DNA of 64,000 bases from Macrostomum hystrix. Taxonomy: Eukaryota > Animalia > Platyhelminthes. The notes below the pieces were generated by a model. It made no database searches, had not been told where the DNA came from, and saw nothing but the letters and a program-made list of their open reading frames with translations. Below, piece by piece: positions 25,001 through 47,394 of this stretch. Made by a program: the position numbers and the translations under genes. The stretch lies in NCBI GenBank assembly GCA_950097015.1, contig CATNEN010000007.1, forward strand, positions 12,462,001 to 12,526,000. Reading direction: 5' to 3'. The first letter of the stretch is position 1. The number at the start of each line of letters is the position of its first letter.

Positions 25001-28000
25001 CCATATTGGCTTCCCAGCTCTGCTCAGGCAGCATCTCCAGGAGGCGCCGTCCTGACTCGGCGTCGCTGGGCCAGATGAGCAGGCACGAGTCCCGCGTGGC
25101 GTGAGTTTTAATGGCCAGGGGCGTGCCCTTGAGGGTTTGCTTCCACAGGAGCCCGTCAATGACGCGGCTAGCTTGTGTCAGCTGGTCGGCAGTCAGACGC
25201 GCGTCCCTGCCAAGGATGACGATCGCCGGCTGCCTCCTTGCGACGGCGGCGAAGGTGGGCCTGCTGCGATCCCCCCCCGTCGCGGAGCCAGAGGCCCCAC
25301 CCTCCTGGGCGGCAGGGCGTGGGGACCGAGGGCCTTCCACGCCCGCCGTCCTGGCTGGCTGGGCTACACTGGCACCGGACTGAGGGTCCAAAGCACTTGA
25401 AGAAGTCGGTAGAGAGTACCCTTCATTGGCTTCGGGCGCCCTGCCTTCCTCAGGGACCGGACAGGTGGGCTGACGGCCTCCCGTAATGGCTGGCTGGGCC
25501 TCCTTCGGCCTAGGCCGAGGGTTCGACACTTCGAGGGCACCCGAGGCCAGTAGCTTGGCCTTGAGGCGTCTGCGGCGGGCTGCACCGGACGTGCTACTCA
25601 GCTTGGCGCTAAGTGGCTCGTTGGGCCCGATGCCGGGTGGGGCAGGTCCTGGATGGCTTGGTCCTGCTGTGGTCGTGATGTTGTCCGAAGAGGGCCCTTC
25701 GCGATGCGTGGGTACCTCCTCGATCTCCATCGTTTGTTTTTGGTTGTTTGATTCCATATCACCGAGAAATCGCTGGAATGCAAAAAAAAAGGAATGGAGG
25801 ACCGCTAATGGCCGGATTACTCCCCGGACCTCCCAGCCCCTCGGCGCGGTGTGACCTTAGGCATTGGAGAGCACAAAAGGCTGTGCCGGGCCCGCAGACT
25901 GGCTGCGTACCCTATGAGGTTGAAGGGTGACACCTTTTCCTCAGAGCCGTAGCCAGAGGTACCTGATCACGCACAGGTGCACGAACGCTGCGGACTGGCC
26001 GCATACCCTGTTAAGGTCGAAGGGTGACACCTTTCCCCCGGAGCCGGAGCCAGAGGTACCTGATCACGCACAGGTGGGCGAAAAACTGCGGACTGGCCGC
26101 ATGCCCTGTTAAAGGTCGAAGGGTGACACCTTTCCCTCAGAGCCGTAGCCAGAGGTACCTGATCACGCACAGGTGCACGAACGCTGCGGACTGGCCGCAT
26201 ACCCTGTTAAGGTCGAAGGGTGACACCTTTCCCCCTGAGCCGGAGCCAGAGGTACCTGATCACGCACAGGTGGGCGAAAAACTGCGGACTGGCCGCATGC
26301 CCTGTTAAAGGTCGAAGGGTGACACCTTTCCCTCAGAGCCGTAGCCAGAGGTACCTGCATCAGATTCTAATACACTGCATCAGATTCTAATACACTGCAT
26401 CAGATTCTAATACACTGCATCAGATTCTAATACACTGCATCAGATTCTAATACACTGCATCAGATTCTAATACACTGCATCAGATTCTAATACACTGCAT
26501 CAGATTCTAATACACTGCATCAGATTCTAATACACTGCATCAGATTCTAATACACTGCATCAGATTCTAATACACTGCATCAGATTCTAATACACTGCAT
26601 CAGATTCTAATACACTGCATCAGATTCTAATACACTGCATCAGATTCTAATACACTGCATCAGATTCTAATACACTGCATCAGATTCTAATACACTGCAT
26701 CAGATTCTAATACACTGCATCAGATTCTAATACACTGCATCACATTCTAATACACTGCATCAGATTCTTTTTATTAGGTTTGAAAAAAAAATTGCGATGA
26801 AGTATAAAATCACGCGCTGTTCATTCTGCGATGCATTTTAGGACACCGTGTTTCCGGTTCGGCATGGGGTAAGCATGTACAATTTACTATAAACATGACA
26901 CAGTGTCCAGGCGTCATAGACTACTCGATAGTAGCTCGTTCCTGTCGGATGCTCAATGCATGCCATCTTCGCTACGCAGGCCAAGACGGCCATATCGGTG
27001 CATCCGAAGTTCCTGGACGAGCCGCCGTCCGGCCGCTATTACTACCCCGGCTACTCGGCCTTCCTCATGGACCGCAACAGCGAGCAGCGCTACTTCATGT
27101 CCGGCTACTCGGGCTTCGTGCCCCGCCTGCGGAACCGGCTGGGCGGCACCTACCCGGTGCTGACGCACGACGCCTTGGACGATTTCGACAGAGCTCGGCG
27201 TCTGCACGCGGCCGTTTTGGCCGGCAAGCCTGACGACGTTGCTGGCGAGGACTGCGTCGGTGAAGACGCGGGAAAGGCGGGTCGCGGACGGCTGCGCGGA
27301 AGGCACGGCGAGGGCGTCATCTACAGGCAGGCCGAGGGACTCCTGCCCAACTACCAGGGACACATTCCCGGTGAGGCAGAATCATCTAGGTCCCAGCTGC
27401 CCAAATACCAGGGACACATTCCTGGTGAGGCAGAATCATCTAGGTCCCAGCTGCTCAACTACCAGGGACACATTCCCGGTGAGGCAGAATCATCTAGGTC
27501 CCAGCTGCCCAACTACCAGGGACACATTCCCGGTGAGGCAGAATCATCTAGGTCCCAGCTGCCCAACTACCAGGGACACATTCCCGGTGAGGCAGAATCA
27601 TCTAGGTCCCAGCTGCCCAACTACCAGGGACACATTCCCGGTGAGGCAGAATCATCTAGGTCCCAGCTGCCCAACTACCAGGGACACATTCCCGGTGAGG
27701 CAGAATCATCTAGGTCCCATCTGCCCAACTACCAGGGACACATTCCCGGTGAGGCAGAATCATCTAGGTCCCATCTGCCCAACTACCAGGGACACATTCC
27801 CGGTGAGGCAGAATCATCTAGGTCCCATCTGCCCAAATACCAGGGACACATTCCCGGTGAGGCAGAATCATCTAGGTCCCATCTGCCCAAATACCAAGGA
27901 CACATTCCCGGTGAGGCAGAATCATCTTAGGTCCCAGGATTCGCGGTAAACGTGTCAGCCTCTCGCACCAAGGTCCCGGAGCTCGATTCCGCGGCGAGGC

Positions 28001-31688: not shown

Positions 31689-32400
31689 GAGGTTGTAGCC
31701 TTGTCGTTAGAGCTTCGGACTCACGACTTGAAGGTCAAGGGTTCGATTCTCGACTCCACTGGAACAATTTACGTCCTTTAGCAAGACACTTAACTCTGCA
31801 TTGCTGCCAGCATGAATGCCATCACTCCAGCATGAATGCCATCACTCCAGCATGAATGCCATCACTCCAGCATGAATGCCATCACTCCAGCATGAATGCC
31901 ATCACTCCAGCATGAATGCCATCACTCCAGCATGAATGCCATCACTCCAGCATGAATGCCATCACTCCAGCATGAATGCCATCACTCCAGCATGAATGCC
32001 ATCACTCCAGCATGAATGCCATCACTCCAGCATGAATGCCATCACTCCAGCATGAATGCCATCACTCCAGCATGAATGCCATCACTCCAGCATGAATGCC
32101 ATCACTCCAGCATGAATGCCATCACTCCAGCATGAATGCCATCACTCCAGCATGAATGCCATCACTCCAGCATGAATGCCATCACTCCAGCATGAATGCC
32201 ATCACTCCAGCATGAATGCCATCACTCCAGCATGAATGCCATCACTCCAGCATGAATGCCATCACTCCAGCATGAATGCCATCACTCCAGCATGAATGCC
32301 ATCACTCCAGCATGATACGCTGATACTCAGATCTTGGGGAACCAAACGGGCGGAAAAGTAAACGGACGCGTCACCTGGCCTTGGCAACAGAAAATTAAAA
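31689..32400 (+). mobile_element. tRNA-derived SINE, family 2, with a CORE-like block, interrupted by a minisatellite
   Basis: A-box-like TAGCCTTGTCG, B box GGTTCGATTC, then GTCCTTTAGCAAGACACTTAACTC. The 3' boundary is uncertain. Confidence 0.55.
31807..32314. repeat. 20-bp perfect minisatellite, ~25 copies
   Basis: CATGAATGCCATCACTCCAG. Confidence 0.97.
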
Positions 32401-32775
32401 TGTGAACTGAGTTCTAGAATCTCTGTGTAAACAACTGTTTGAGTATTAGTATCTAAGAGAGACAGTCAGGGAACAGGTTGCTCAGCAATTTAAGCTGACA
32501 AAGCTTTTCAAAGTAGGACACAGTGCCAATTAGCAAAGAAGAGATGTGTATAAGAAAACAAAGATCATAGGTAAAAAATCGCGATTTAATCCGGTTAAGA
32601 ATTGACAGCATAGAAAATAAATAGTCCGGCTGCTTGACAGCAATGAAGTTCGTCGAAACTAATTTTCGAATCTAAATAAATTCTAAAAGCAATTTTAACT
32701 GGTCATGAGTGACGGCACAGGGTGCTGCATTGCTGCGGCAGCCGCATCAGAATTTGAGTTCTCCCCGTAAAGCTC

Positions 32776-35154
32776 TTACAATTCTGGCAGATCTTGCGGC
32801 CCCAAATCGCCTGCACTCGCTGAAGTCAGCTGGCTCATGACCTCGTCATAGTCGTCATTCATTTCCCCGTCCAGCGTAAAGAGAAGTAGCTCGCTCAGAG
32901 GATCAGCTGGGTCAGGTGCAACTGCAGGTGTATCCATGCGAGCCATCTTTTTGGATCGAGGTTCTGTAAAGATTTTGTAAAGGATAGCGTATATAGAGTA
33001 ATAATAATATTTATTGTACAAAGTTTATAACAAAAAGTGCGCTCCCAATGCACCTGACTCTAGACCGGCTGACAAACTGACAAGCTTCATCACCACTGCT
33101 TCGCTAGAATCACCGCTCTTCTTCTCCTGGACAGTCACTGAGAAGGAGCCTGAGATGTTACGCATGGTTGTGCTTGAGAAGTCGAACACCAGGAGGTGCT
33201 GCAATGAGCAGTTCTGATTTAACCCTATGAAACTCGTGCATTCGAGAACAGCTGATGCAGCTCAATATTACCTTCTTCAGCTCCCTGGGCTGCACTTCGA
33301 ATCTGAGCTCCTGCTCTTCATTCTCCACAATCACAAGGAAGTCTGACACAGTAGTGCCTGCGATTGCAGATGGAACCCTTTCATAACAGAGTACATGACA
33401 AGCATCGGTTGGTAAGCACAATCGCATACCTGTGGGCAGGGGGTCCTTCGTGTAGAGCCACACGTCCTGGTCAGCACGCGACACCGAGTCAGGAATGATG
33501 TACTCAACTGTCATGGTTGAGAAGATCTCTGGAATCCGAAGAGCATGAGTATAAGTGAGCTGCCGTCTCAAAGTAACTCATCTAAGTGTGCTCAGGGATA
33601 GAAATAATGTCCAGGGTCGCTAGCAGTGCTGCTGCTTTGCCCCAAAAATGGCCAACTACTGCTCACTGGCGTCACCGATCACATCGGTGCACAGAGGCTG
33701 GCAGTCCGCTGGAGCCCACTCGCCTGAGCTCGGCAGCTGATAGAACACTTGGAAGGCCAGACGGAGTTTGTTGACTTCCTTGCCCTGGAAGGGGTTGCTT
33801 TTGGCCTCCTCTGAAATGCATAAAAAGTACATTGGTCGGTACTTCTCACTGGTGTGGAAGCTGCAGAACCCTGACTGTTGAGCATACTGGAGTCACTCAC
33901 TGCTGAACAAATTATACTTGTCCATCCTCATTGAGTAGAAGCCGTCCTGCTGACTCGAGTCACTCGGGGCAGCCTTTGTTGCTGTGAGTCCGTTCTCAGC
34001 GGCTCCCCTCGCTTTGCCTCTGCCTTTTTTGCTCTTTTTCGGAGTGGAGACGATCCCGACCTTCTCCAGTCTGACCATGGGTTAGCAATCGCAAAGTGGG
34101 TTTTGAAGCGCTGCTTATGAAGTGAAAAGAAGAAAAACCAACATGGCTAACTTTATCTATGCATACGACTTCGCCTGTCGAATCGAAATGGAGAAAATGA
34201 GAAATGTAGCTAGCCCAGTCCGGCATTATTGAAGGCTGTTCAGTCCACTCAGGCTACATAAGCATAGGAGAATTCTATTGAAAGTGATTTAAAGCTAAGA
34301 ACAAATCTGCAGTTGAATCGCTGCTTTCATGGAATCGGCCCCTGTCTGTTAACTGTCTGTCTGTAACTGTCTGTCTGTTAACTGTCTGTTAACTGTCTGT
34401 AAACTGTCTGTCTGTTAACTGTCTGTCTGTTTACTGTCTGTCTGTTAACTGTCTGTCTGTTAACTGTCTGTCTGTTAACTGTCTGTAAACTGTCTGTCTG
34501 TTAACTGTCTGTCTGTTAACTGTCTGTCTGTTAACTGTCTGTCTGTTAACTGTCTGTCTGTTAACTGTCTGTTAACTGTCTGTCTGTTAACTGTCTGTTA
34601 ACTGTCTGTCTGTTAACTGTCTGTCTGTTAACTGTCTGTCTGTTAACTGTCTGTTAACTGTCTGTCTGTTAACTGTCTGTTAACTGTCTGTCTGTTAACT
34701 GTCTGTCTGTTAACTGTCTGTCTGTTAGCCATCTGTCTGTCTGTTAACTGTCTGTCTGTTAGCCATCTGTCTGTCTGTTAACTGTCTCTCTGTTCGGACA
34801 ATGGAATGACATGGAATCGGCCCCTCACGTCACTTCCGTGGTCGGGCTGGAAGCCGGGAAGCTGAGCTCCTTCTGGAACATGCCTCGGTCGCAGTCGTCT
34901 CCAGCCAGGTAGAACGGGTGCGGCGTCCGGTCCTCGAAGACGGTGCAGCCGATCAGCTTCAGTTTGAAGTCAGTTTTTACCTGCTGTACACAGGTGACCT
35001 GCACAGTAACTGGAGTCTTTCCGCCAGGGTTGCGACTGTGCAGAACACTGCCCATGCGACCATCTTTGACTTCCTTCAGGTAGCGGAACCGGTGCAGCTT
35101 CGATGGCTGATGCTGCTGGGTGATTGACAGTGAGACTGTGGGCCTTGCATGCAT
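32776..35154 (-). CDS. Rel-homology-domain (NF-kB/NFAT superfamily) transcription factor, copy A, ~385 aa; exons 35154-34829, 34070-33901, 33810-33667, 33528-33430, 33357-33272, 33198-33054, 32963-32776
   Basis: In order: QPSKLHRFRYLKE, PHPFYLAGDDCDRG, LEKVGIV..PKK, VNKLRLAFQV, QPLCTDVIGD, an IPT-like region, a basic NLS-like patch and an acidic tail. Six GT-AG introns are all phase-consistent (1158 nt in total). Confidence 0.82.
34344..34786. repeat. 15-bp TGTCTGTCTGTTAAC minisatellite in intron 1 of copy A
   Basis: Seen directly. A shorter version lies at ~38445-38692 in copy B. Confidence 0.92.
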
Positions 35155-35299
35155 GCTGTGCTCTAAAATGTTATGAAATATGAAGTCAGCTTGGCTACAG
35201 AAAAAATATTTCAATCAATATAAGTTCTTTACATAACCCTAACCATGATATTCTTGCACTTTTGTTGGTGTCAGATGACCCACAATAAGAGGAATATGG

Positions 35300-36178
35300 T
35301 TTAGATGCTGGACAGCTAGATATGCTGGATATGAATGCTAGATATGCTGGATAAGGATGCTAGATATGCTCGATATGGATTCTAATATGCTTGATAGGGA
35401 TGCTAGATATGCTTGATAGGGATGCTAGATATGCTGGATATGGATAGTATTCATGCTGGATATTGATGCTAGATATGCTGGATATGGATGCTAGATATGC
35501 TGGATATGGATGCTAGATATGCTGGATATGGATGCTCGATATGCTGGATATGGATACTAGTCATGGTGTATATGAATGCTAGATATGCTGGATATAGATA
35601 CTAGTCATGGTGGATATGAATGCTAGATAAGCTGGATATGGATGCTAGATATGCTGGATATGGATGCTAGATATGCTGGATATGGATGCTAGATATGCTG
35701 GATATGGATGCTAGATAAGCTGGATATGGATGCTAGATATGCTGGATATGGATGCTAGATAAGCTGGATATGGATGCTAGATATGCTGGATATGGATGCT
35801 AGATATGCTGGATATGGATGCTAGATATGCTGGATATAGATACTAGTCATGGTGGACATGGATGCTAGATAAGCTGGATATGGATGCTAGATATGCTGGA
35901 TATGGATGCTAGATATGCTGGATATGGATGCTAGATATGCTGGATATAGATACTAGTCATGGTGGACATGGATGCTAGATAAGCTGGATATGGATGCTAG
36001 ATATGCTGGATATGGATGCTAGATATGCTGGATATAGATACTAGTCATGGTGGACATGGATGCTAGATATGCTGGATAAGGATGCTATATATGCTGGATA
36101 AGGATGCTAGATATGTTGGATAAGGATGCTAGATATGCTGGATAAGGATGCTAGACATGCTGGATAAGGATGCTATAT
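35300..36178. repeat. 22-bp minisatellite, ~40 copies, degenerate edges
   Basis: GCTAGATATGCTGGATATGGAT. Confidence 0.92.
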
Positions 36179-37009
36179 ATTTGTACTGGATATTTACGTA
36201 TTTAAAATTTACAAAGAAAAGCAATTACCGATCAAAAGCGCTCACTTTTTAAGTAGCCGATCGATTTGATCTCAGCTAAAAGACAGATGTTGTGAACACG
36301 AGTTCGCTTATTAAAATGTTATGTCTGTGGAAAAACCGCGGAAATTCCATCTGGACATGGAGCTACCTAGTACAATTTACATAGTTATAATAAACATTGT
36401 GCTGAGGTGTACACTCAATGTACTGTACGCTCGCATCTTTCTGCTGCGCGTGAGGCAATAAAGAAGTTTATTTGTTCTATAAAATATGAAAAAACTTTTC
36501 GACAGACAAATTCATATTCAGATGGCATCGCTTGAACGGATCGCAAAATGTCCAGCTGTTTCTCATATAATAATTGTTTAGCAATGACAAGAACTTTGCA
36601 CTATGCTTAGGATCCTATGATTATGCGAAGACTAAAAATCAATAATACCCATTGTCAGAACGAAAACGATAGTCTTTTGGGCTTTACACAATACCATCAT
36701 GCATGATTAATTCAAACGTAAAACATTACTCTGCAGAAAGGCATATTAGAGAAAAGAAAAAATACGAACAGAAGTACACAAGCCAAGAAAGTGGTAAAAT
36801 CTCTGCGGGCCGACAGCAGTCATTTACTGTGCGTTTCATAAACAGTAAAATTTGCATGCTATAGCCAATTTAAGAGGCCGAGTAGTATCCCCAAATATCA
36901 GGCACAATTTCAATGTTCAGTTTTAATGGACATTTAAAGATAATATGTCAGAATGTATCCCCAAACAGTATCTGGATAGGTAGCACAATAAATCAATGTA
37001 AACTGATGT

Positions 37010-39053
37010 CTAACTGGCCATGAGTGACGGCACAGGGTGCTGCATTGCTGCGGCAGCCGCATCAGAATTTGAGTTCTCCCCGTAAAGCTCTTGCAATTCT
37101 GGCAGATCTTGCGGCCCCAAATCGCCTGCACTCTCTGAAGTCAGCTGGCTCATGACCTCGTCATAGTCGTCATTCATTTCCCCGTCCAGCGTAAAGAGAA
37201 GTAGCTCGCTCAGAGGATCACCTTGGTCAGGTGCAACTGGAGGTGGATCCTTGCGAGCCTTTTTGTTTCGAGGTTCTGTAAAGATTTTGTAAAGGATAGC
37301 GTATATAGAGTAATAATAATATTTATTGTACAAAGTTTATAACAAAAAGTGCGCTCCCAGTGCACCTGACTCTGGACCGGCTGACAAACTGACAAGCTTC
37401 ATCACCACTGCTTCGCTAGAATCACCGCTCTTCTTCTCCTGGACAGTCACTGAGAAGGAGCCTGAGATGTTACTCATGGTTGTGCTCGAGAAGTCGAACA
37501 CCAGGAGGTGCTGCAATGAGCAGTTCTGATTTAACCCTATGAAACTCGTGCATTCGAGAGCAGCTGATGCAGCTCAATATTACCTTCTTCAGCTCCCTGG
37601 GCTGCACTTCGAATCTGAGCTCCTGCTCTTCATTCTCCACAATCACAAGGAAGTCTGACACAGTAGTGCCTGCGATTGCAGATGGAACCCTTTCATAACA
37701 GAGTGCATGACAAGCATCGGTTGGTAAGCACAATCGCATACCTGTGGGCAGGGGGTCCTTCGTGTAGAGCCACACGTCCTGGTCAGCGCGCGACACCGAG
37801 TCAGGAATGATGTACTCAACTGTCATGGTTGAGAAGATCTCTGGAATCCGAAGAGCATGAGTATAAGTGAGCTGCCGTCTCAAAGTAACTCATCTAAGTG
37901 TGCTCAGGGATAGAAATAATGTCCAGGGTCGCTAGCATTGCTGCTGCTTTGCCCCAAAAATGGCCAACTACTGCTCACTGGCGTCACCGATCACATCGGT
38001 GCACAGAGGCTGGCAGTCCGCTGGAGCCCACTCGCCTGAGCTCGGCAGCTGATAGAACACTTGGAAGGCCAGACGGAGTTTGTTGACTTCCTTGCCCTGG
38101 AAGGGGTTGCTTTTGGCCTCCTCTGAAATGCATAAAAAGTACATCGGTCGGTACTTCTCACTGGTGTGGAAGCTGCAGAACCCTGACTGTTGAGCATACT
38201 GGAGTCACTCACTGCTGAACAAATTATACTTGTCCATCCTCATTGAGTAGAAGCCATCCTGCTGACTCGAGTCACTCGGGGCAGCCTTTGTTGCTGTGAG
38301 TCCGTTCTCAGCGGCTCCCCTCGCTTTGCCTCTGCCTTTTTTGCTCTTTTTCGGAGTGCAGACGATCCCGACCTTCTCCAGTCTGACCATGGGTTAGCAA
38401 TCGCAAAGTGGGTTTTGAAACGATGCTTATGAAGTGAAAAGAAGAACTGTCTGTCTGTAACTGTCTGTCTGTTAACTGTCTGTTAACTGTCTGTCTGTTT
38501 ACAGTCTGTCTGTTAACTGTCTGTCTGTTAACTGTCTGTCTGTTAACTGTCTGTAAACTGTCTGTCTGTTAACTGTCTGTCTGTTTACAGTCTGTCTGTT
38601 AACTGTCTGTCTGTTAACTGTCTGTCTGTTAGCCATCTGTCTGTCTGTTAACTGTCTGTCTGTTAGCCATCTGTCTGTCTGTTCTGTCTCTCTGTTCGGA
38701 CAATGGAATGACATGGAATCGGCCCCTCACGTCACTTCCGTGGTCGAGCTGGAAGCCGGGAAGCTGAGCTCCTTCTGGAACATGCCTCGGTCGCAGTCGT
38801 CTCCAGCCAGGTAGAACGGGTGCGGCGTCCGGTCCTCGAAGACGGTGCAGCCGATCAGCTTCAGTTTGAAGTCAGTTTTTACCTGTACCCAGGTGACCTG
38901 CACAGTAACTGGAGTCTTTCCGCCAGGGTTGCGACTGTGCAGAACACTGCCCATGCGACCATATTTGACTTCCTTCAGGTAGCGGAACCGATGCAGCTTC
39001 GATGGCTGATGCTGCTGGGTGATTGACAGTGAGACTGTGGGCCTCGCATGCAT
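37010..39053 (-). CDS. Rel-homology-domain transcription factor, copy B, ~410 aa; exons 39053-38731, 38382-38213, 38122-37979, 37840-37742, 37669-37584, 37510-37366, 37275-37010
   Basis: Near-identical to copy A (offset 4312 for the internal exons). NLS-like PRNKKARK and a longer C-terminus. Confidence 0.82.
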
Positions 39054-39594
39054 GCTGTGCTCTAAAATGTCCAAATTAGGCAAATGTCTGATAAATTGGC
39101 CCTTTAAAATTTGCACTTTTAGCTAAGTGTGGATCCACGAAATGATGTCTACGAGAATTGGATTTCGCTTCTGTATTGAATGCCCTCCCGTGAGAATATT
39201 CAAGATCACATGTACGAGTAATACAGCTAGATTTACCTTGGTTTAATGAGATAAAGCAATTTACTCGCGAATACAGAAAAATTTGCTACTGTATTCCGTA
39301 TATAATTACTGTATATAATATAATTCTGAATATATTCCGTATGTATTCTGAAGCAGCACGTATCTCTGGTCTGTGTGGTCCTAGTGTTGATCAGTTTGAT
39401 GAGCCACGGAGCTGGAATGCTGAAGCAAAAATAGATCAGCGCCAAATACAACACGGTGAGGATTGCCCGCGGCTGGTCCTTTGAAAACCCGCGGCAATTC
39501 CGTGGCACGTTGTGACAGGAAAATCCATGGCAAACCCGATTACACAGTGTCTATTTTTAGAACAGTCATAGGGAACTGCGCATGTAGCTACGGA

Positions 39595-39841
39595 GGGGGG
39601 TCGTGGCAGAGCTGTTAACGCGTTTGCCTCTCGCACCACGGTCCCTAAGTTCGATTTCGCGGCGAGGCCACATTTATTTGGGGTGCATTCGCGGAGAGAA
39701 GGCTGGGGGCTTGTCGTGCAATTTACGGCCTTGAAGGCCAACCTCCAAGGTACAGATAAGTGTACATACACAGCCTGACGATGAGAAAGTCAGGGCAGAT
39801 GTTCACGCCTGTGTGAGCGTGTGGCTGCGTACAGTATCTGT
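39595..39841 (+). mobile_element. SINE family 1 copy, 3'-truncated
   Basis: GTGGCAGAGCTGTTAACGCGTTTGCCTCTCGCACC...AAGTTCGATTTC; body matches 13.9-14.1 kb. Confidence 0.8.
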
Positions 39842-40669
39842 ATTTAATTGTCGGCTTGCCGAAATTGAATGCGAGCTTTGTTGAAATTGAACGGAAAAAG
39901 TTGCGAGGTAGAACGTCCGTAAAAGATGTGAGCAGTTTACATGTGCGGTGCGGAAAAAGGGGTTGCCCACGGGAATCCCGCGGAATCACCGGTGGTCGAC
40001 AAAAGCCATCCCGTGGAAATACCCCCTGAAAAGAGTAGCATGTGTGAAAATGAATCAGTAAACTAGCAGCTTTCGCATCGGGATATGTAACTGCTTTTTG
40101 GTGGACGTTTGCCCGGCGACATTTTTAAGGCACTGTCTGTGGATTTAGTGGAGCGAGAAACTGTATAAAAATTTCTCTCCGGCTGGCTTTGGCATAACTC
40201 AAGTGGCACGCTAGGGGCTTTCCCAGAGGTTCCGTGTGTACTTTTTTCATGCACTTTGAACGTAAAAATCGAACGCAGTTGATTCGTTGAGTTCAGTTCT
40301 CGATTTAATCTGTCTGCGATTTGTGAAGACGCATCTCGAAAAAAAAAGTTACTACAAGAAAGGAAGCACTGTGCAAGCACCAAATTAAGGTATTCTTTTT
40401 AGCAATGGATCAATTCACACAGAAAAATAAATATAAAAACGATTCAGGAACGCGAGCTTGTACGCTTATGGTAAAAAGCACTCGAGCACGCCGCGACCAT
40501 AGACAATTACGAGCATCCCCGGCTCGCCTAGACCAACCTTGGCTGCCATGTAAGTGCTCAGCTTAGGAGAGCAAGGGATGAGCTAGTTAGGACATTGATT
40601 CCAAGCTATAGAAGTAACGACCCGCACTGCGTAGCGTGCGTTTGATAAATCCCTGAGCAACGCTGCAAG

Positions 40670-43600
40670 ATGAACCCAGATGAACAGTTATCCTGGTCGA
40701 TGGTGCAGAAAGGGCGGGTTTCCGTCACACACCAGAGGCTGCGCGGTATTGTGAAGGACCAGGTGCACATCGAGTGCGACTGCCAATCCAACTCGCTGCT
40801 CTCCGACATCGTCGGCGCGGACAAGGAAGGCGATTTCCGGCGTGTCGCTGGCTCGTGGCTAAAAACGCAGCTGGCCAAGGCCAAGGCAGGCAAGAAGCAG
40901 GATGCGGCCGGGGAGAAGACGCAGGTGCTGAAGCTGTTTTTGGCAGAGCTCAAGAACGACGATCTGCTGGTCAAGAACGGCGATTTGACTCTTCAGTGCG
41001 AGGTTTTGCTCGTGCGTGACGGAGTCCTGTACTTCCAGAACAAGTCCCTGGTGTCGGAGCACCCCTCTGATAGCCGTCTAGTGCTGTCAGTCAGCGAGGT
41101 GAATCGAGAAGCCATGGAGACTCTGGTGACCAAGCCAGGCCCCCACAAACTGTACTACGGCGACTCCAAGCTGTCCGATAGCCAGCAGCGAATCTGCTGG
41201 GACCCACGGATCAGCTTTGCCAACGAATTAATTCCTTTGGATATGGTCGCCACCAGGCAGGCACTCGCGAGAAGTGTCGATCTGAATGAACTGAATAATA
41301 TTCTGCCGAACTTGGACAAGCTGGGCAACATCAAGGCTGAAGCGGGTAATGTGGCTCAGCCGGTGCAGGAAGCCGGAAGTAAGAGCGGGAAGCTCAACCA
41401 GGTGAGTGCTGGTGCCCCTAAAAGGGCCCGTAATACTCTTACTTGATCTCTGTTGCTATTTCTTAACTTATGAACTTGAAACCTTCTTCCATTCCTCTAA
41501 TCCCAACCTGCCATGCCACAATGCCAAGGTGGTGCTTCTGAACTGCATCTGCCTTCTCATAGACAACAAGGTCGTCATCCTCCGGGGCTTCCTGCACGCC
41601 GGCACCGCCTGGCATCGCATCATCAACGGCACCTTGGTGGGTTCGGACAAAAGTCTCAACCCTGTGGTCATCTCGGGCAGGCCGGTGTACAAGAACGAAT
41701 CAAACGATGACAATCTTCTACTGAGTGGCGTCACGCTGTACAGCATAGGCAACACAATTTACGCCCGCAACGCACCCCTGCTGGAGGACGCGGTGGTGCA
41801 CGCGGACGGCCAGGAAATCAGCATCTCGGGCCTGCCCATGAGCTCCCTGTGCGGCTTTCCGGTGCCAAAAGAGCCAGAGCCCGCGCGGCTGTTCTTGCTG
41901 GACGGCCGCTTCTCAGTTCGCAACACCGAGATCAGTATTTGCGACGGCACCGTCTTGCTCCAGGACCTGAGCATGCAGCTGCCATATGACACCATCGATG
42001 AGGTTCGCGTGAAGGACTCGCTGGTCTTCATCGGTCCCACCGCCGCTAGAAAAGAGGCAGAGGCTTATACGAAGGTATGCGACATCATCTACAGGGACAA
42101 CATTTTGCTGCTGGGTGACCTCACGCCATTGCTGAAGGCTGGCCTCATCTGCCACGCAGAGCAGAAGCAACCTCTGGCCTGGCTCTCCGGAGATCCGGAA
42201 GCCGCCGCTCGGGCCCGCAACTTGGAGCGGTCGGCGGTGCCCCCGGAGGCGCTGACAAATCGGGTGCAAATGCTGTCGGAAGGTACCTGTATCCTGGACC
42301 GCAACGGTATGTACTTCATCAAGGGACAAGTGATTCTGCAGGGCAAGAAAGTGCTCATCGAAAATGGTGTGCCGCTGTTCAGCTCCGAGACGTCTGCCGA
42401 GGTCAGGTAAGGTGCTGAGTGCACTGGCTTGGGTAAAACAACTGGATGGGCTCAGCGAAACTAAATGCCTACTAGTAATGCCTACCATTTCTAGCCCACT
42501 CTCACCTGCTCATCACCATCCAGGAGGATGTACTTGGGAACTCCGCCGCCGTACCTGTCGGGTCGTGTACTGCTGAGCCCGGATGAGGCCAAACAACTCG
42601 GAACGGAGACACTGGATGGCTGCGTTGTGCTGAAGGCTGTGCGCCTGGACATGACGAGCGGCAAGATCATTCTCAACAACCAGGTGCCAGTCATGAGTGA
42701 CTGCAGGCTTGTCATGGACCGGCATGTGTTCAGCCCAATGGAACTGGGCTTTGATGCTCAGGAGGCATCGCGAGACAGCTCCAGAGAGTCTGTTGGCGCG
42801 CCACGGAAAACCATTTCTTTAGGGAAGGGAACGTCAACAGCCGATCAAGATGACATCGGACGTGCCACCTCCGACTGGGCTGACAGCAGGCAGCGCACTG
42901 CAACAACTACCTTTGGCAGCATGGCTGAGGCTACCAAATTAGGAAAAACTAAATCTGACAGATCCACTGATGAGTCACGCCTCGGAAAAACTAAATCTGA
43001 CAGATCCACTGATGAGTCACGCCTCGGAAAAACTAAATCTGACAGATCCACTGATGAGTCACGCCTCGGAAAAACAAAATCTGACAGATCCACTGATGAG
43101 TCACGCCTCGGAAAAACTAAATCTGACAGATCCACTGCTGAGTCAAGCCTCGGAAAAACTAAATCTGACAGATCCACTGATGAGCCAGACCTCAGTAAAA
43201 CTAAATCTGACAGATCCACTAATGAGTCAAGCCTCGGAAAAACAAAATCTGACAGATCCACTGCTGAGTCAAGCCTCGGAAAAACTAAATCTGACAGATC
43301 CACTGATGAGCCAGACCTCAGAAAAACTAAATCTGACAGATCCACTAATGAGTCAAGCCTCGGAAAAACTAAATCTGACAGATCCACTAATGAGTCAAGC
43401 CTCGGAAAAACAAAATCTGACAGATCCACTAATGAGTCAAGCCTCGGAAAAACAAAATCTGACAGATCCACTAATGAGCCAGACCTCGGAAAAACAAAAT
43501 CTGACAGATCCACTAATGAGTCATGCCTCAGAAAAACAAAATCTGACAGATCCACTAATGAGTCAAGCCTCGGAAAAACAAAATCTGACAGATCCACTGA

Positions 43601-44673
43601 TGAGCCAGGCCTCGGAAAAACAAAATCTGACAGATCCACTAATGAGCCAGACCTCGGAAAAACAAAATCTGACAGATCCACTAATGAGTCACGCCTCGGA
43701 AAAACAAAATCTGACAGATCCACTAAATCCACTAATGAGTCAAGCCTCGGAAAAACAAAATCTGACAGATCCACTAATGAGCCAGACCTCGGAAAAACAA
43801 AATCTGACAGATCCACTAATGAGTCATGCCTCGGAAAAACAAAATCTGACAGATCCACTAATGAGTCAAGCCTCGGAAAAACAAAATCTGACAGATCCAC
43901 TGATGAGCCAGGCCTCGGAAAAACAAAATCTGACAGATCCACTGATGAGCCAGACCTCGGAAAAACAAAATCTGACAGATCCACTGATGAGTCATGCCTC
44001 GGAAAAACAAAATCTGACAGATCCACTGATGAGCCAGGCCTTGGATTGGCCAGGGATGCGCAGAGCATGGGCGACAACTCGGTGAGAAGCAGGGGATCAC
44101 TGAGCAACAAGCTCCCCAACCTCATGTGTGCTCACTCTAATTCACTCATTTCCCCAGCCGTATGCTCATGTGTACTCACTCTAATTCACTCATTTCCCCA
44201 GCCGTATGCTCATGTGTACTCACTCTAATTCACTCATTTCCCCAGCAGTATGCTCATGTGTACTCACTCTAATTCACTCATTTCACCAGCCGTATGCTCA
44301 TGTGTACTCACTCTAATTCACTCATTTCCCCAGCCGTATGCTCATGTGTACTCACTCTAATTCACTCATTTCCCCAGCCGTATGCTCATGTGTACTCACT
44401 CTAATTCACTCATTTCCCCAGCCGTATGCTCATGTGTACTCACTCTAATTCACTCATTTCCCCAGCCGTATGCTCATGTGTACTCATCTAATTCACTCAT
44501 CTTGCCAGTGCTCAGAGATTAGTGCTCTATTTAGTGTTGCCCTTCGCCGCCCGCAGAGCCAAGGTATTCTAGGAAACATGGTCCTGTTCTCAAGTCACAA
44601 GGACAAGAAGCTGGTGTTCAGCATGAAGTCGCACCTGGATCAGATGCTGCACTTCCTGGACATGCAAGGCTGA
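40670..44673 (+). CDS. Uncharacterised multi-exon protein with a 14-aa repeat; approximate exons 40670-~41378, 41563-42406, 42524-44081, ~44509-44673
   Basis: Three long GC-rich ORFs. The junction AG|GTAAGG...CCAG|G is phase-consistent. The first donor, last acceptor and start codon are uncertain. No family recognised. Confidence 0.55.
42939..44045 (+). repeat. 42-bp in-frame repeat (LGKTKSDRSTDESR-like), ~26 copies
   Basis: Seen directly, within ORF 42528-44228. Confidence 0.93.
44121..44508 (+). repeat. 44-bp repeat x9 containing a branch-point-like motif and splice acceptor
   Basis: CTCATGTGTACTCACTCTAATTCACTCATTTCCCCAGCCGTATG. Confidence 0.92.
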
Positions 44674-44955
44674 CAGGCGGTTCAGACAGTGACCGGCTGC
44701 ACAAGGCATTGCGGCATCAGCAAAGCGCGCCCACTCACTCGCTGTAGTTGAAAAGTAGAAGAACATAATTTAGTAGCCCTGGCAGGACTGTGCCGAGTTT
44801 AGTTTAACCCCGCTGCCCGCTTGTTCGTCCAGTTTTTTTGCCGAATGAGACCAAATATATTTTTCCCTCTTCATTTGTCCGTCCTATGGAGCGAATCCGC
44901 GAACGAACCTTTCGGAACAGATCCAGAGCCTGCTTTCTCGGATCCTTAATTGCCG

Positions 44956-45066
44956 AGCATCCATTGTTATCCAACTCACAGCATCCATCGATTGTTATCC
45001 AACTCACAGCATCCATCGACTGTTATCCAACTCACAGCATCCATCGATTGTTATCGATTGTTAGCC
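44956..45066. repeat. Degenerate edge units of the 28-bp satellite
   Basis: GCATCCATCGATTGTTATCCAACTCACA. Confidence 0.85.
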
Positions 45067-47394
45067 ATGGGCTCCTCCGTGCCCCGGCCCCGAGCCAGAG
45101 GCGGGAACTCGACGGGGTCAGCCGCCCAGTCCCCACCCCCGGCCCCGAGCCCAGGCCCAGAGTCACCCTCAACCGGTGCCGACACCGCACCCTGGGCCGT
45201 GGGAGGGGCGCTCGAAGGGCCCTGCTCGATGGAGCTGGGCACCTTAGAGGCCTCCCCCGTAGCCCTTGGTTGCGGCGCATCTCAGCGCGCAGCTGGGCCA
45301 TCCTGGCGGTTCGCACCACCTCGGAGGCCCGCTGGAGAAGGCCCCGGCGCTTTGTGATGCGCGCGGGGCGACGCTCAGAGCTGCCAGCGATGGCACGCTC
45401 TGGCCTTTTTTGGCGAGACGACTGGGCCCTGCCCCCAGTCCCAACCTCGGGGTCCGAGGACCCTTCAGTGGCCGGTACGGTGGTGGGCCCGGTCTGACCT
45501 CGAGTTTTATCTGCCTCGAAGGCGAAGATTTTGGTCTTCCACAGACCAATGCAGATGTTGGCGCCATCTGGGTATCGGCGTGTCCATTGCTCGGACAGGC
45601 CCAGAATGGCGGTGAACCCGGTGCCATCGGGGCGCAGGATCGTGCGGTGCACGATCAGGCCCGCTGTCGGCAGCTCCCGGTTCATCGCGATGAGGCCCAT
45701 GCGGAGGTCCTCAGCGCTGGTGACGACACTTTTCGCCGGGACGAAAATGCGGTGTCGCTTGGTCTTTGGTGGCTCGTTCTCCCGGAGGAAGTCGAGGCCA
45801 GCCGCCCAGCTCTGCGTGGGCAGCAACTCAAGGAGCCGCCGCCCTGATTCCGCGTCGCCGGGCCAGACGACGAAGCACGATTCCCTGGTAGCGCTTGCGC
45901 CGACCGCCAGGGGCTCGCCCTTCAGTTGAAGTTGCCACAGCATAGCATCTATGTTGCGGCAAATGTTGCTGAGCTGTTCGCTGCTCAGCCTTTTTCCGTC
46001 TCTGCCGGTGATGACAACGGCAGGTTGCCTACGTGCGATGGCGGCGTAGGTGGCATGTGGTCCCGGGCCCTGTCCGGTGGCGACCCCACCCTCGGGATCA
46101 GCGTCGGCGGTGGGCACAGGGCCCTCTGCCTCCGCTTCTCCTTCAGGCCGAGCCGCCGTCCGGATGGGCGCCGGGACCTCCTTGGCCCGCGACCCTGGCC
46201 TCGGGGCGTCGTGGGCTCCGCCCCGTGCAGGAGCCTGGGCAGGAGGCGCAAGGCCCCCCGCCCCAGCCCCCGCCCTAGGCAGAGCCCCTTCGGCCCCTCT
46301 GGCCTGGGCCCGGTCCTCGGTCGATGGAGCCGGCTTGCCGTGGGCCATTAAGCGCCTACGACGCTTTGCCGCTCCAGAGGTTGAGGAGCGCTTAGCGCCC
46401 CGGTCATCGCGCGAGTTGGGCAGCGCGGCATTTGTGGCGGTCGCGGGGCCAGCTAGCCCGGGCGCCGCAGCGTGTATGGCCTCGGGCACCATGGTGTCCT
46501 CGGCCGGAGCAGTTGGAAGGCTGGAAGCCATTAGAAGCTGCAAAGAGGAGAGGGGCTTCCTGTAGACACAGGCAGGAATAACCCGCTCAGCCGCGATCCC
46601 AAAGCTGAGCGGGGGCAGCCAAAAAAGACAAGTTACAACCCGGGGTGGGATGCCAGGACCACCGGGAGGAACCGTAGGAGACCAGACTACTCCCTGGTCA
46701 AGCGTCCATCAGCACGGTCAACACTGGGACATTAGAGGGCGCTATTTGGCCAGCGCCGAGGCCTGCGGACTGGCCGCATACCCTGTTAAGGTCAAAGGGT
46801 GACACCTTTCCCTCAGAGCCGTAGCCAGAGGTACCTGATCACGCACAGGTGCACGAACGCTGCGGACTGGCCGCATACCCTGTTTAGGTCAAAGGGTGAC
46901 ACCTTTCCCTCAGAGCCGTAGCCAGAGGTACCTGATCACGCACAGGTGCACGAACGCTGCGGACTGGCCGCATACCCTGTTTAGGTCAAAGGGTGACACC
47001 TTTCCCTCGGAGCCGTAGCCAGAGGTACCTGATCACGCACAGGTGCACGAACGCTGCGGACTCGCCGCATACCCTGTTAAGGTCAAAGGGTGACACCTTT
47101 CCCTCCAGCCGGGGCTAGAGGTACCCAGTTAGGCCGGAGGCCCTGGATGGGTCATCCAGCGCTGTTGCCCATTCTGTCCGGCTGCCCTAGGGTCAGCCTT
47201 GAACACTCGCGGGACGTGTACCCATGGGTCAGCTGACGGGACAACGTGGAGAGGATTCCTGCACCCGGAGGCACAGGGCTCCATTCCTGCCAAGCCTGCT
47301 CAAAAAACGACTGCAGGTGTGAGGCATCGCAGACCTTAGCCCGTAGGCCTGGTCTGACTCATACCACACAGGCATTGTGTCCCGCCGGTGCGAG
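45067..47394 (-). mobile_element. LINE-B: 5' UTR with 97-bp monomers and a frameshifted ORF1; ORF2 absent
   Basis: ORF1 is homologous to 24147-25757 (RRQPAVVI, PPKTKRHRIFVPA, GFTAILGLS), with a frameshift near 45250-45290. Monomers at ~46763-47124. Confidence 0.88.

Follow-up and report, generated by a model that had tools for sequence, protein, structure and literature searches.

Two recently duplicated, transcribed genes of the flatworm Macrostomum hystrix probably encode short Rel-class proteins

Results

Gene structure and transcription of the pair

The window, a stretch of 64,000 nucleotides from contig CATNEN010000007.1 of M. hystrix, contains two neighbouring genes on the minus strand, each with seven in-frame coding exons and GT-AG splice sites throughout. 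Copy A lies at 32776-35154 (-), with its ATG at 35154 and its stop codon at 32776-32778 (385 codons). Copy B lies at 37010-39053 (-), with its ATG at 39053 and its stop codon at 37010-37012 (410 codons). The features of the locus are as follows.

Copy B
39237..39404, minus strand: exon 0, a non-coding 5' exon (X5, X6 and X2 contigs show the 39061/39237 joint, with CT..AC ends)
38731..39061, minus strand: exon 1, coding from 39053; first half of the Rel homology DNA-binding domain with the recognition loop RFRYLKE (Pfam PF00554 and contig joints)
38213..38382, minus strand: exon 2; LEKVGIVCTPKK, then a basic low-complexity insert (joints 38382/38731 and 38122/38213; collinear tblastn with P0001)
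37979..38122, minus strand: exon 3; end of the N-terminal domain, NPFQG...LRLAFQV (contig joints and P0001 alignment)
37742..37840, minus strand: exon 4; linker and start of the IPT/dimerisation-type domain (contig joints; p65 dimerisation domain matched by residues 216-318 of the orthologue model)
37584..37669, minus strand: exon 5; middle of the IPT-type domain (contig joints and P0001 alignment)
37366..37510, minus strand: exon 6; end of the IPT-type domain (contig joints and P0001 alignment)
37010..37275, minus strand: coding part of exon 7; basic patch PRNKKARK, a 75-residue tail (16 D/E, no K/R) and the stop codon (contig joints)
38445-38678: 15-base minisatellite, 15.9 units, the same array as in copy A

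Copy A
34829..35154, minus strand: coding part of exon 1 (Pfam PF00554, 24.8 bits; 97% protein identity with copy B exon 1)
33901..34070, minus strand: exon 2
33667..33810, minus strand: exon 3
33430..33528, minus strand: exon 4
33272..33357, minus strand: exon 5
33054..33198, minus strand: exon 6
32776..32963, minus strand: coding part of exon 7; basic patch KKMARM, premature TAA, 26 codons shorter than copy B
34342..34794, no strand: 15-base minisatellite in intron 1, 31.6 units
35315..36180, no strand: 22-base minisatellite of 39 units, immediately upstream of copy A; the corresponding position in copy B is occupied by the 5' intron and exon 0

The 5' end of copy B exon 0 is a minimum, set by where the contigs stop. 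Upstream of 39053 there is an in-frame stop codon and no ATG. The acceptor of copy A exon 1 (TTTTAG, with the exon beginning at AGCACAGC) is placed as in copy B, 8 bases upstream of the coding part.

Transcript contigs from X5, X6 and X1 skip the copy B introns exactly, with CT..AC ends on the plus strand (joints 38382/38731, 38122/38213, 37840/37979, 37669/37742, 37510/37584 and 37275/37366), and contigs from X5, X6 and X2 splice an eighth, non-coding exon (39237-39404) to the acceptor at 39061. The first-pass annotation of this DNA had described seven small exons that splice in frame, twice, and had named RNA support for the junctions as a check; all introns of copy B are now confirmed by spliced contigs. 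Exon 1 of the pair is present at only two genomic places, each with introns; thus, the joined form comes from RNA rather than from a retrocopy. For copy A, contigs in X5 and X6 carry its letters together with the exon 6/7 joint, and X1 contigs contain its 3' flank.

Comparison of the two copies

The pair had been called divergent. This is correct when the proteins are compared with canonical Rel proteins, but not for the two copies, which share 98.2% nucleotide identity over 1439 bases (95.3% around exon 1). They differ at 21 of 1233 exon bases compared with 5 of 463 intron bases. Most of the exon differences change the protein, and they fit relaxed constraint and adaptive change equally well.

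Copy B looks like the functional gene; copy A is transcribed, but has more derived changes and a shortened tail. It is possible, though we would not bet on it, that only copy B works and that copy A is a young duplicate becoming a pseudogene, transcribed merely through shared transcription with, or read-through from, copy B. A CAA-to-TAA change costs copy A its last 26 codons, homology between the copies ends where exon 1 has its acceptor, and a minisatellite stands in place of a copy A exon 0. Additionally, contigs continue past the stop codon of copy B, from 36945 down to at least 36400, towards copy A. Judged by the M. lignano protein P0001, most changes that can be polarised are derived in copy A: its basic patch has gone from KKARK to KKMARM, exon 2 has Ser for Cys, and exon 6 has Leu for Pro. 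However, all splice sites of copy A are intact, its Rel homology region is whole, and the portion of the tail that it lacks shows little conservation in M. lignano. Contigs bearing copy A letters have a correctly spliced exon 6/7 junction and extend into the 3' flank of copy A itself, and copy B also has a derived change, Asp to Tyr within the recognition-loop insertion.

Profile and fold evidence for a Rel homology region

The window proteins were profile-searched exon by exon. The M. lignano orthologue P0001 (PAA93792.1), which aligns collinearly across all seven exons in tblastn, stood in for the joined protein in the whole-protein profile search and in folding. Exon 1 of each copy matched Pfam PF00554 (RHD_DNA_bind) at 24.8 bits (E 2.4e-5) over positions 5-85 of 169, that is, over part of a profile whose cut-off of 27 bits is set for the whole domain. 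P0001 passed this cut-off with 41.5 bits over positions 1-168, and a second M. lignano protein, P0027, scored 44.2 bits. Neither the exons nor the family proteins matched the Pfam RHD_dimer profile (PF16179) at E thresholds of 0.1-1.

On its own, P0001 found canonical Rel proteins at no better than E 0.01-0.08. The family profile, searched against the PDB, gave E values of 3e-21 for RelB (79 bits), 4e-19 for c-Rel (72 bits) and about 1e-18 for p65 (66-71 bits), with the Rel proteins as a whole between 1e-21 and 1e-17; p100/p105 followed at about 4e-12 (47-49 bits). The alignment of the family profile to RelB extends into the dimerisation domain. These scores, which are a ranking and not a phylogeny, place the proteins, as far as sequence can tell, nearer to the Rel class than to the p50/p52 or NFAT classes.

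The AlphaFold model of P0001 has a pLDDT of about 80-89 in its folded domains and 63-70 in the recognition loop. Residues 120-176 fall below 50 and appear as a disordered basic insert of about 55 residues within the N-terminal domain. The model matched whole Rel homology regions of Rel/NF-kB proteins (Foldseek E 1e-14, Z 16-17). Its N-terminal domain matched Dorsal, p65 and p50 at Z 15-17 (Gambif1/Dorsal: Z 16.6, with 162 residues at rmsd 3.0). Its C-terminal domain (residues 216-318) matched the dimerisation domain of p65 at Z 11.9, with 97 of 102 residues at rmsd 2.4, and those of RelB, p50 and p52 at Z 11.2-11.8. The predicted fold indicates that an IPT-type dimerisation domain is present and is missed by the Pfam profile.

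No Pfam ankyrin match was found on any exon, orthologue or family protein. The copy B reading frame closes after the acidic tail, as do the transcript contigs, which counts against an ankyrin C-terminus of the NF-kB type. The chain shows no ankyrin-repeat inhibitory domain of the kind that marks the NF-kB class (p105/p100/Relish). The architecture first proposed from the letters, an RHD, an IPT/dimerisation-type domain, a basic patch and an acidic tail without ankyrin repeats, is borne out by exon and orthologue profiles, by the fold of the orthologue model and by the composition of the tail. Of the checks named at that time, profile search recovered the DNA-binding domain and not RHD_dimer, and structure prediction recovered both domains.

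Relationship to NFAT

The motifs that had been quoted (QPSKLHRFRYLKE, PHPFYLAGDDC and LRLAFQV) are all present, and the first-pass annotation had read them as a mixture of Rel and NFAT. We consider it highly improbable that the proteins are Rel/NFAT hybrids or NFAT-class factors with NFAT5-like DNA recognition. There is a likeness at the level of short strings: a His stands ahead of R-x-R-Y and Y-L-x-E after it, PHPFY resembles PHGFY/PHGYY, and an NFAT5-like gene of the same genome has PHGYYQ. However, the family profile reached NFATc1 only at E 0.11 (15 bits), TonEBP was absent from its matches at E up to 1, and the P0001 model matched NFAT/TonEBP at Z 12-14, below its Rel/NF-kB matches. The residues after PHP (L-A-G-D-D-C) and LRLAFQV follow the p65/c-Rel pattern. 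Moreover, the genome has three separate NFAT5-like loci (C24:2419740, C38:8417063 and C26:346574), with human NFAT5 as best PDB match (5e-19) and a canonical RHD_dimer domain at 40-76 bits.

The recognition loop

The loop reads HRFRYLKEVK(D/Y)GR. It retains R, R, Y, E and G-R, and has three extra residues before G-R. The redox-sensitive Cys of this loop (Cys38 of p65) is replaced by Lys in both copies and in P0001 and P0027, whereas the other aligned family members have Ser, Thr or Lys. An insertion of 3-5 residues is found in all aligned members. The reported Cys-to-Lys replacement is therefore real in both copies, but as the Cys is absent from every aligned member, its loss is not peculiar to this gene. 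Because of the insertion and the Lys, the proteins may differ from RelA in DNA specificity and in redox or covalent control.

The family in two Macrostomum species

The M. hystrix genome holds at least 12 loci of this family and M. lignano at least 18 clusters. The M. lignano members (P0001, P0027, P0029 and at least 15 further clusters) are annotated automatically in public databases as "RHD domain-containing protein". In a tree of exon 1, with fish RelB (P0039) as the sole canonical sequence and outgroup, the two copies, P0001 and P0027 formed one clade (support 100/99) on a stem of 1.5 changes per site. On the sequences compared, the pair and its orthologues are the most divergent branch of the family, with its longest internal branch. 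The duplicates cluster by species, which suggests that the duplications were independent in each species or that the copies were homogenised.

Exon-wise profile searches of the genome detected no conventional Rel/NF-kB gene. On this sequence evidence, the Macrostomum family appears to supply the only Rel/NF-kB-type genes of the genome, beside the three conventional NFAT5-like genes. Among the papers covered by the literature search, none names these M. lignano genes or links Macrostomum with RHD genes.

Discussion

We believe that the locus holds two recently duplicated, transcribed host genes that encode short Rel-class transcription factors with a Rel homology region, of 385 and 410 amino acids, and we put the probability of this reading at about 0.7. 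The earlier proposal of a Rel-class factor specific to its lineage is supported, and the host is a flatworm. The suggestion of novelty does not hold: orthologues and paralogues of M. lignano are already public, and divergent flatworm RHD genes have been described (PMC13563047). As the family is already listed for the sister species, the pair is real, yet it is not a new kind of gene.

Based on fold and conserved residues, the proteins are likely to bind DNA, dimerise, enter the nucleus and activate transcription. We propose that the N-terminal domain would contact DNA through the recognition loop (R-F-R-Y-x-x-E...G-R) and that the C-terminal immunoglobulin-like domain would drive dimerisation. 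The basic patch just past this domain is a putative nuclear import signal, and the acidic, hydrophobic tail a putative transcription activator. As there are no ankyrin repeats in cis, cytoplasmic retention, if any, would require a separate partner.

It is also conceivable, but quite unlikely, that the proteins keep the Rel fold and have lost sequence-specific activation, and serve as decoys, as dominant-negative dimer partners of other family members or as cytoplasmic scaffolds. The long internal branch of the subfamily, the altered recognition loop and the disordered basic insert in the N-terminal domain would all suit such a role. However, every DNA-contacting residue of the loop is preserved, the basic patch and acidic tail are conserved between species, and the gene has been kept in two Macrostomum species.

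Transcription factors that activate through DNA remain our preferred reading. In Platyhelminthes, p50/p105 was not found (PMC11432056), and parasitic flatworms are reported to have lost the TLR pathway (PMC4484250). No clear NF-kB was found in Schmidtea mediterranea, which has seven divergent, long-branch RHD transcription factors and a well-conserved NFAT5 homologue; knock-down of one RHD gene was lethal and was unconnected with the immune read-out tested (PMC13563047, 2026). The statement in the first-pass annotation that canonical NF-kB is reported missing from several flatworms agrees with these reports.

The repeatedly reported lack of a canonical Toll/NF-kB axis raises the question of what drives inducible immune and stress transcription in flatworms. 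In M. hystrix, tandem clusters contain at least 12 Rel-like genes that are short and divergent, at least this pair of them expressed, and conventional NFAT5-like genes are present as well. This provides concrete candidates for functional work in M. lignano, which is open to experimental tests of gene function. We speculate that the Macrostomum family is a flatworm substitute for canonical NF-kB and that the window subfamily is diversifying under pathogen pressure, although we regard this as unlikely. In such a substitute the rebuilt loop would read non-canonical DNA sites and would escape redox and IkB-type control. The fast evolution of the subfamily, seen in its long stem branch and in the mostly protein-changing differences between the young duplicates, would then reflect such diversification. 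The gain in knowledge is incremental; the sister-species genes were public and a comparable planarian set had been described (PMC13563047). The family-wide loop insertion and Cys loss offer a clear, testable structural contrast with every solved Rel protein.

Comparison with known systems

In both the planarian and Macrostomum, multiple RHD genes on long branches occur beside a conserved NFAT5 homologue, and NF-kB has no clear orthologue; this likeness is one of description and does not imply orthology (PMC13563047). NFAT5/TonEBP and NFATc share with the pair the Rel homology fold, the His before R-x-R-Y and the aromatic pair after PH(P/G), but the likeness is far weaker by profile and fold, and the genome has conventional NFAT5-like genes of its own.

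Compared with RelA/p65, RelB, c-Rel and Dorsal/Gambif1, the flatworm proteins have the same loop residues (R-F-R-Y-x-x-E-G-R), the PHP...G-x-D-C motif and the (V/L)RL-x-FQV strand. Their basic patch directly follows the dimerisation domain, at the position of the RelA nuclear import signal, and they share the acidic C-terminal tail and the lack of ankyrin repeats; the Rel class also gives the best profile and fold matches. They differ from it in their length of only 385-410 amino acids, their identity of about 20% with canonical Rel proteins, the three-residue loop insertion, the Lys at the redox-sensitive Cys position and a dimerisation domain that Pfam RHD_dimer does not recognise. In addition, a disordered basic stretch replaces the helical insert of the N-terminal domain. 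The M. lignano family is another close system: P0001 and P0027 are the orthologues of the pair, 64-70% identical in exon 1, collinear with it over all seven exons and, as here, present as two copies on one contig, and the M. lignano family members have the architecture and loop insertion of the window pair.

Gene structure of the two copies

Six-frame reading and alignment of both stretches showed that 32696-35171 and 37011-39070 are duplicates. Each copy consists of seven coding exons on the minus strand, and the GT-AG borders are intact in both. Thus, the first-pass annotation, which had described seven exons splicing in frame twice, had the coordinates right, and both copies fit its description.

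Features of the two copies
32776-35154, minus strand: copy A coding sequence, ATG at 35154, stop at 32776-32778, 385 codons
37010-39053, minus strand: copy B coding sequence, ATG at 39053, stop at 37010-37012, 410 codons
39237-39404, minus strand: copy B exon 0, a 5' exon
34342-34794: 15-base minisatellite (CTGTCTGTTAACTGT) in intron 1 of copy A, 31.6 units
38445-38678: 15-base minisatellite (CTGTCTGTTAACTGT) in intron 1 of copy B, 15.9 units
35315-36180: 22-base minisatellite upstream of copy A, between the copies, 39 units

From exon 2 to the 3' end, counting introns, the copies share 98.2% identity over 1439 bases; around exon 1 the figure is 95.3%. The pair had been called divergent; this holds in comparison with canonical Rel proteins, but not for the copies in comparison with each other. 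On the 5' side their homology extends only some 17 bases beyond the ATG, as far as a common acceptor, TTTTAG followed by AGCACAGC. A counterpart of exon 0 for copy A was not found within the window, and the 22-base minisatellite occupies its place.

Transcription of the copies

Transcript contigs from public sequencing runs, whose library type is not on record, were compared with window positions 36400-40400. Contigs from two runs (X5 and X6) had no mismatches with the window and omitted exactly the six predicted introns of copy B, with CT..AC on the plus strand corresponding to GT..AG on the gene strand. A single X6 contig of 1133 bases links exon 0 through exon 6. These results provide the RNA junction support that the first-pass annotation had proposed as a check, as all six copy B introns are spliced in the contigs.

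Copy B joints in the transcript contigs
38382/38731, 38122/38213, 37840/37979, minus strand: introns
37669/37742, 37510/37584, 37275/37366, minus strand: introns; the joint at 37669/37742 was reported as 37668/37741, with the cut placed one position further
39061/39237, minus strand: seventh joint, exon 0 to exon 1

Read across the junction of exons 0 and 1, the sequence upstream of 39053 has a stop in frame and lacks an ATG. Thus, exon 0 is non-coding and the start codon originally assigned at 39053 stands. Exon 1 is present at only two places in the genome, both intron-containing, which indicates that the intron-less form is RNA rather than a retrocopy. An origin of the genes themselves as retrocopies or transposons was ruled out because both copies have introns and the Macrostomum lignano orthologue is collinear over the seven coding exons.

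Copy A is transcribed too. Its letters occur in X5 and X6 contigs, recognised by the first 19 letters of exon 7 and by four variants at 37221-37246. The intron between exons 6 and 7 is spliced out of these contigs, and a contig from a third run, X1, extends into copy A's own 3' flank.

Two further observations concern the transcripts. An X1 contig over 38734-39063 carries a copy-A-like exon 1 (CTG insertion at 38882, G at 38991), and its loose end on the upstream side reads CTTGGTTTAA, the final 10 bases of copy B exon 0 (39237-39246), which occur just once in the window. This contig is an exact match to neither window copy. It represents either copy A exon 1 spliced to copy B exon 0 across copy B, or a recombinant allele, or a chimeric contig. 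Unspliced X5 and X6 contigs cover 36400-36945, downstream of the copy B stop and towards copy A; they would be compatible with a long 3' UTR or with read-through from copy B to copy A. The TTTTAG acceptor of copy A might be a trans-splice site.

Differences between the copies

Differences were counted exon by exon, skipping split codons. There were 21 in 1233 exon bases and five in the 463 bases of introns 2-6, and the majority of the exon differences change the protein. The direction of change was judged by the M. lignano orthologue (PAA93792.1, here P0001). By this standard copy A is derived in its basic patch (KKARK to KKMARM), in exon 2 (Cys to Ser), in exon 6 (Pro to Leu) and in a CAA to TAA change that creates a stop and removes the final 26 codons. 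Copy B is derived at an Asp to Tyr change within the recognition-loop insertion. Of the two, copy B is more likely to be the working gene, and copy A may be on its way to being lost.

Domain identity

The window exons were searched singly, and the full-length protein was represented by P0001 (370 aa). Exon 1 of either copy matched Pfam RHD_DNA_bind (E 2.4e-5, profile positions 5-85 of 169) with 24.8 bits, slightly under the whole-domain cut-off of 27, and exons 2-7 searched singly in Pfam gave no matches. When exon 1 was run exhaustively with phmmer against 1.84 billion representative proteins, only 12 of the matches were true relatives, and all nine whose source was looked up were from M. lignano. 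The best of them, P0001, is 64-70% identical in exon 1 and collinear with all seven exons of copies A and B. It lies above the Pfam cut-off (41.5 bits, positions 1-168 of 169), and its M. lignano paralogue P0027 scores 44.2 bits. Thus, the profile search that had been suggested for the DNA-binding domain finds it in the orthologue and, just under the cut-off, in exon 1. Pfam RHD_dimer was undetected in every family member searched. No ankyrin repeats were found, in agreement with the earlier description.

A profile built from ten members of this family of short Rel-like proteins was run against all PDB sequences.

Family profile against PDB
RelB: E 3e-21
c-Rel: E 4e-19
p65: E 1e-18 to 3e-16
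Gambif1: E 2e-15
p100/p105: E about 4e-12
NFATc1: E 0.11

The profile alignment extends into the dimerisation domain. P0001 as a single query reached c-Rel and p65 at E 0.01-0.08 only, which shows that the subfamily has drifted far. Directly after the dimerisation-type domain copy B has PRNKKARK, where the family consensus is P-x-S-K-R-K-R-P, and the tail behind it contains 16 acidic and no basic residues.

The recognition loop was placed by alignments to p65 and RelB. These bear out the claim that Lys occupies the position of p65 Cys38. Three extra residues lie between the conserved Glu and Gly-Arg, and the loop retains R, R, Y, E and G-R. In all aligned family members the Cys position is occupied by Ser, Thr or Lys, and the loop has an insertion of 3-5 residues. 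Thus, the loss of Cys and the insertion are family traits and are not private to this gene.

Predicted fold and the relationship to NFAT

An AlphaFold2 model of P0001, made with the family alignment, had a mean pLDDT of 66.6. Both folded domains were mostly at about 80-89, and three segments (residues 1-5, 120-176 and 319-370) were below 50. In Foldseek the whole Rel-homology regions of RelA, RelB, p50, p52 and c-Rel ranked top (E about 1e-14), with NFAT1 at 5e-10 and TonEBP at 9e-9.

Alignments of the P0001 model by a second structural aligner
Whole model with c-Rel, RelA and p50: Z 16-17
Whole model with NFAT1 and TonEBP: Z 12-14
Residues 10-214 with Gambif1/Dorsal: 26% identity, Z 16.6, rmsd 3.0 over 162
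Residues 216-318 with the p65 dimerisation domain: Z 11.9, rmsd 2.4 over 97/102

Structure prediction, another check suggested at the outset, thus puts the model closest to Rel/NF-kB. The match to p65 also shows that the region previously called IPT-like is, by fold, a Rel dimerisation-type domain, although Pfam RHD_dimer is blind to it. When two chains of P0001 residues 212-322 were predicted as a complex the score was 0.02, which weighs neither way.

The first-pass annotation had also seen NFAT-like features. At the level of letters the likeness exists: a His before R-F-R-Y, Y-L-x-E and P-H-P-F-Y. The class was ranked by PDB profile scores and fold Z-scores in place of a Rel/NF-kB/NFAT tree, and on the sequence profiles and the model these rankings place the family in Rel/NF-kB. 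In addition, the host genome has three separate, conventional NFAT5-like loci whose Rel dimerisation domains are canonical (Pfam RHD_dimer 40-76 bits), and one of these loci carries PHGYYQ.

NFAT5-like loci in the host genome
C24:2419740-2420027
C38:8417063-8417353
C26:346574-346783

The IPT exon at the C38 locus, the one searched, had human NFAT5 as its best PDB match (5e-19). The NFAT-like character therefore did not hold up, and a Rel/NFAT hybrid as a class was rejected because both profile and fold favour Rel/NF-kB and because NFAT5-like loci exist separately.

Family, tree and genome context

Genome-wide searches covered the 220-Mb, 42-contig host assembly. That the close protein relatives all come from M. 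lignano, at 64-70% identity, suggests that the host is a congener of that species. The Pfam profile finds eight loci and the exon 1 protein query finds 12.

Loci found with the exon 1 query
Window: the pair described here
C1:23.98-24.02 Mb: five loci
C7:0.39-0.41 Mb: four loci
C38:2.85 Mb: one locus

The ten loci outside the window (on C1, C7 and at C38:2854760), mostly in two tandem clusters, belong to other subfamilies of the family. An exon-wise search, which is not exhaustive, found no conventional Rel or NF-kB gene in this genome, and a search for the IKK scaffold domain (PF18397) gave marginal matches (E 0.04).

Against a set of 5.8 billion proteins, a first family profile, swamped by low-complexity words, found seven M. 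lignano proteins; the cleaned alignment found 18, plus one fish RelB. No relatives outside Macrostomum were found among the 8000 candidates scored per profile search, which does not imply absence elsewhere. The UniRef automatic name of the M. lignano members is "RHD domain-containing protein".

A maximum-likelihood tree of the exon 1 region was rooted on the fish RelB (P0039), the sole canonical sequence included. Copies A and B form one clade with P0001 and P0027 (support 100/99); at 1.5 changes per site, its stem is longer than any other internal branch of the family. Within it the duplicates cluster by species (window pair 97/74, M. lignano pair 99/92). The tandem pairs therefore originated, or were homogenised, independently in the two species.

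Neighbouring elements

A repeat at about 39603-39841, some 200 bases upstream of exon 0, has a tRNA-like start (GGTCGTGGCAGAG...GTTCGATTTCG). Dozens of RNA contigs match it at 90-95% identity, with a summed depth in the thousands, and it is probably a tRNA-derived SINE family. A gathering search of Rfam over 32000-40600 gave no matches, and the ORFs at 40670-46543 are without a Pfam match. No part of the window resembled human sequence.

Other elements in the window
20449-25757, minus strand: LINE with endonuclease, reverse transcriptase and RNase H domains
26956-27930, plus strand: ORF with a CMI2B-like ciliary protein motif

Proposed function and comparison with other flatworms

We read copies A and B as Rel-class transcription factors. 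The analysis shows how the genes are built, that they are transcribed, and which domains and fold the proteins have. The four functional steps are inferred: the protein would bind DNA through its modified recognition loop, the immunoglobulin-like domain may mediate dimerisation, the basic patch may direct nuclear import, and the acidic tail could serve in activation.

The pair is real, expressed and unstudied; no paper in the searchable literature discusses Macrostomum RHD genes, and the lone co-mention is unrelated. It belongs to a family already visible in public data, and its interest is therefore moderate. That flatworms carry divergent RHD genes is, in general terms, on record in the literature, and the first-pass statement that canonical NF-kB had been reported absent from several of them was broadly right. 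Platyhelminthes are reported to be without p50/p105 (PMC11432056), parasitic flatworms to have lost the TLR pathway except Pellino (PMC4484250), and flatworms to miss many NF-kB pathway components (PMC4894443). For Schmidtea mediterranea, seven RHD genes on long branches and a well-conserved NFAT5 are reported, with no clear NF-kB (PMC13563047, 2026).
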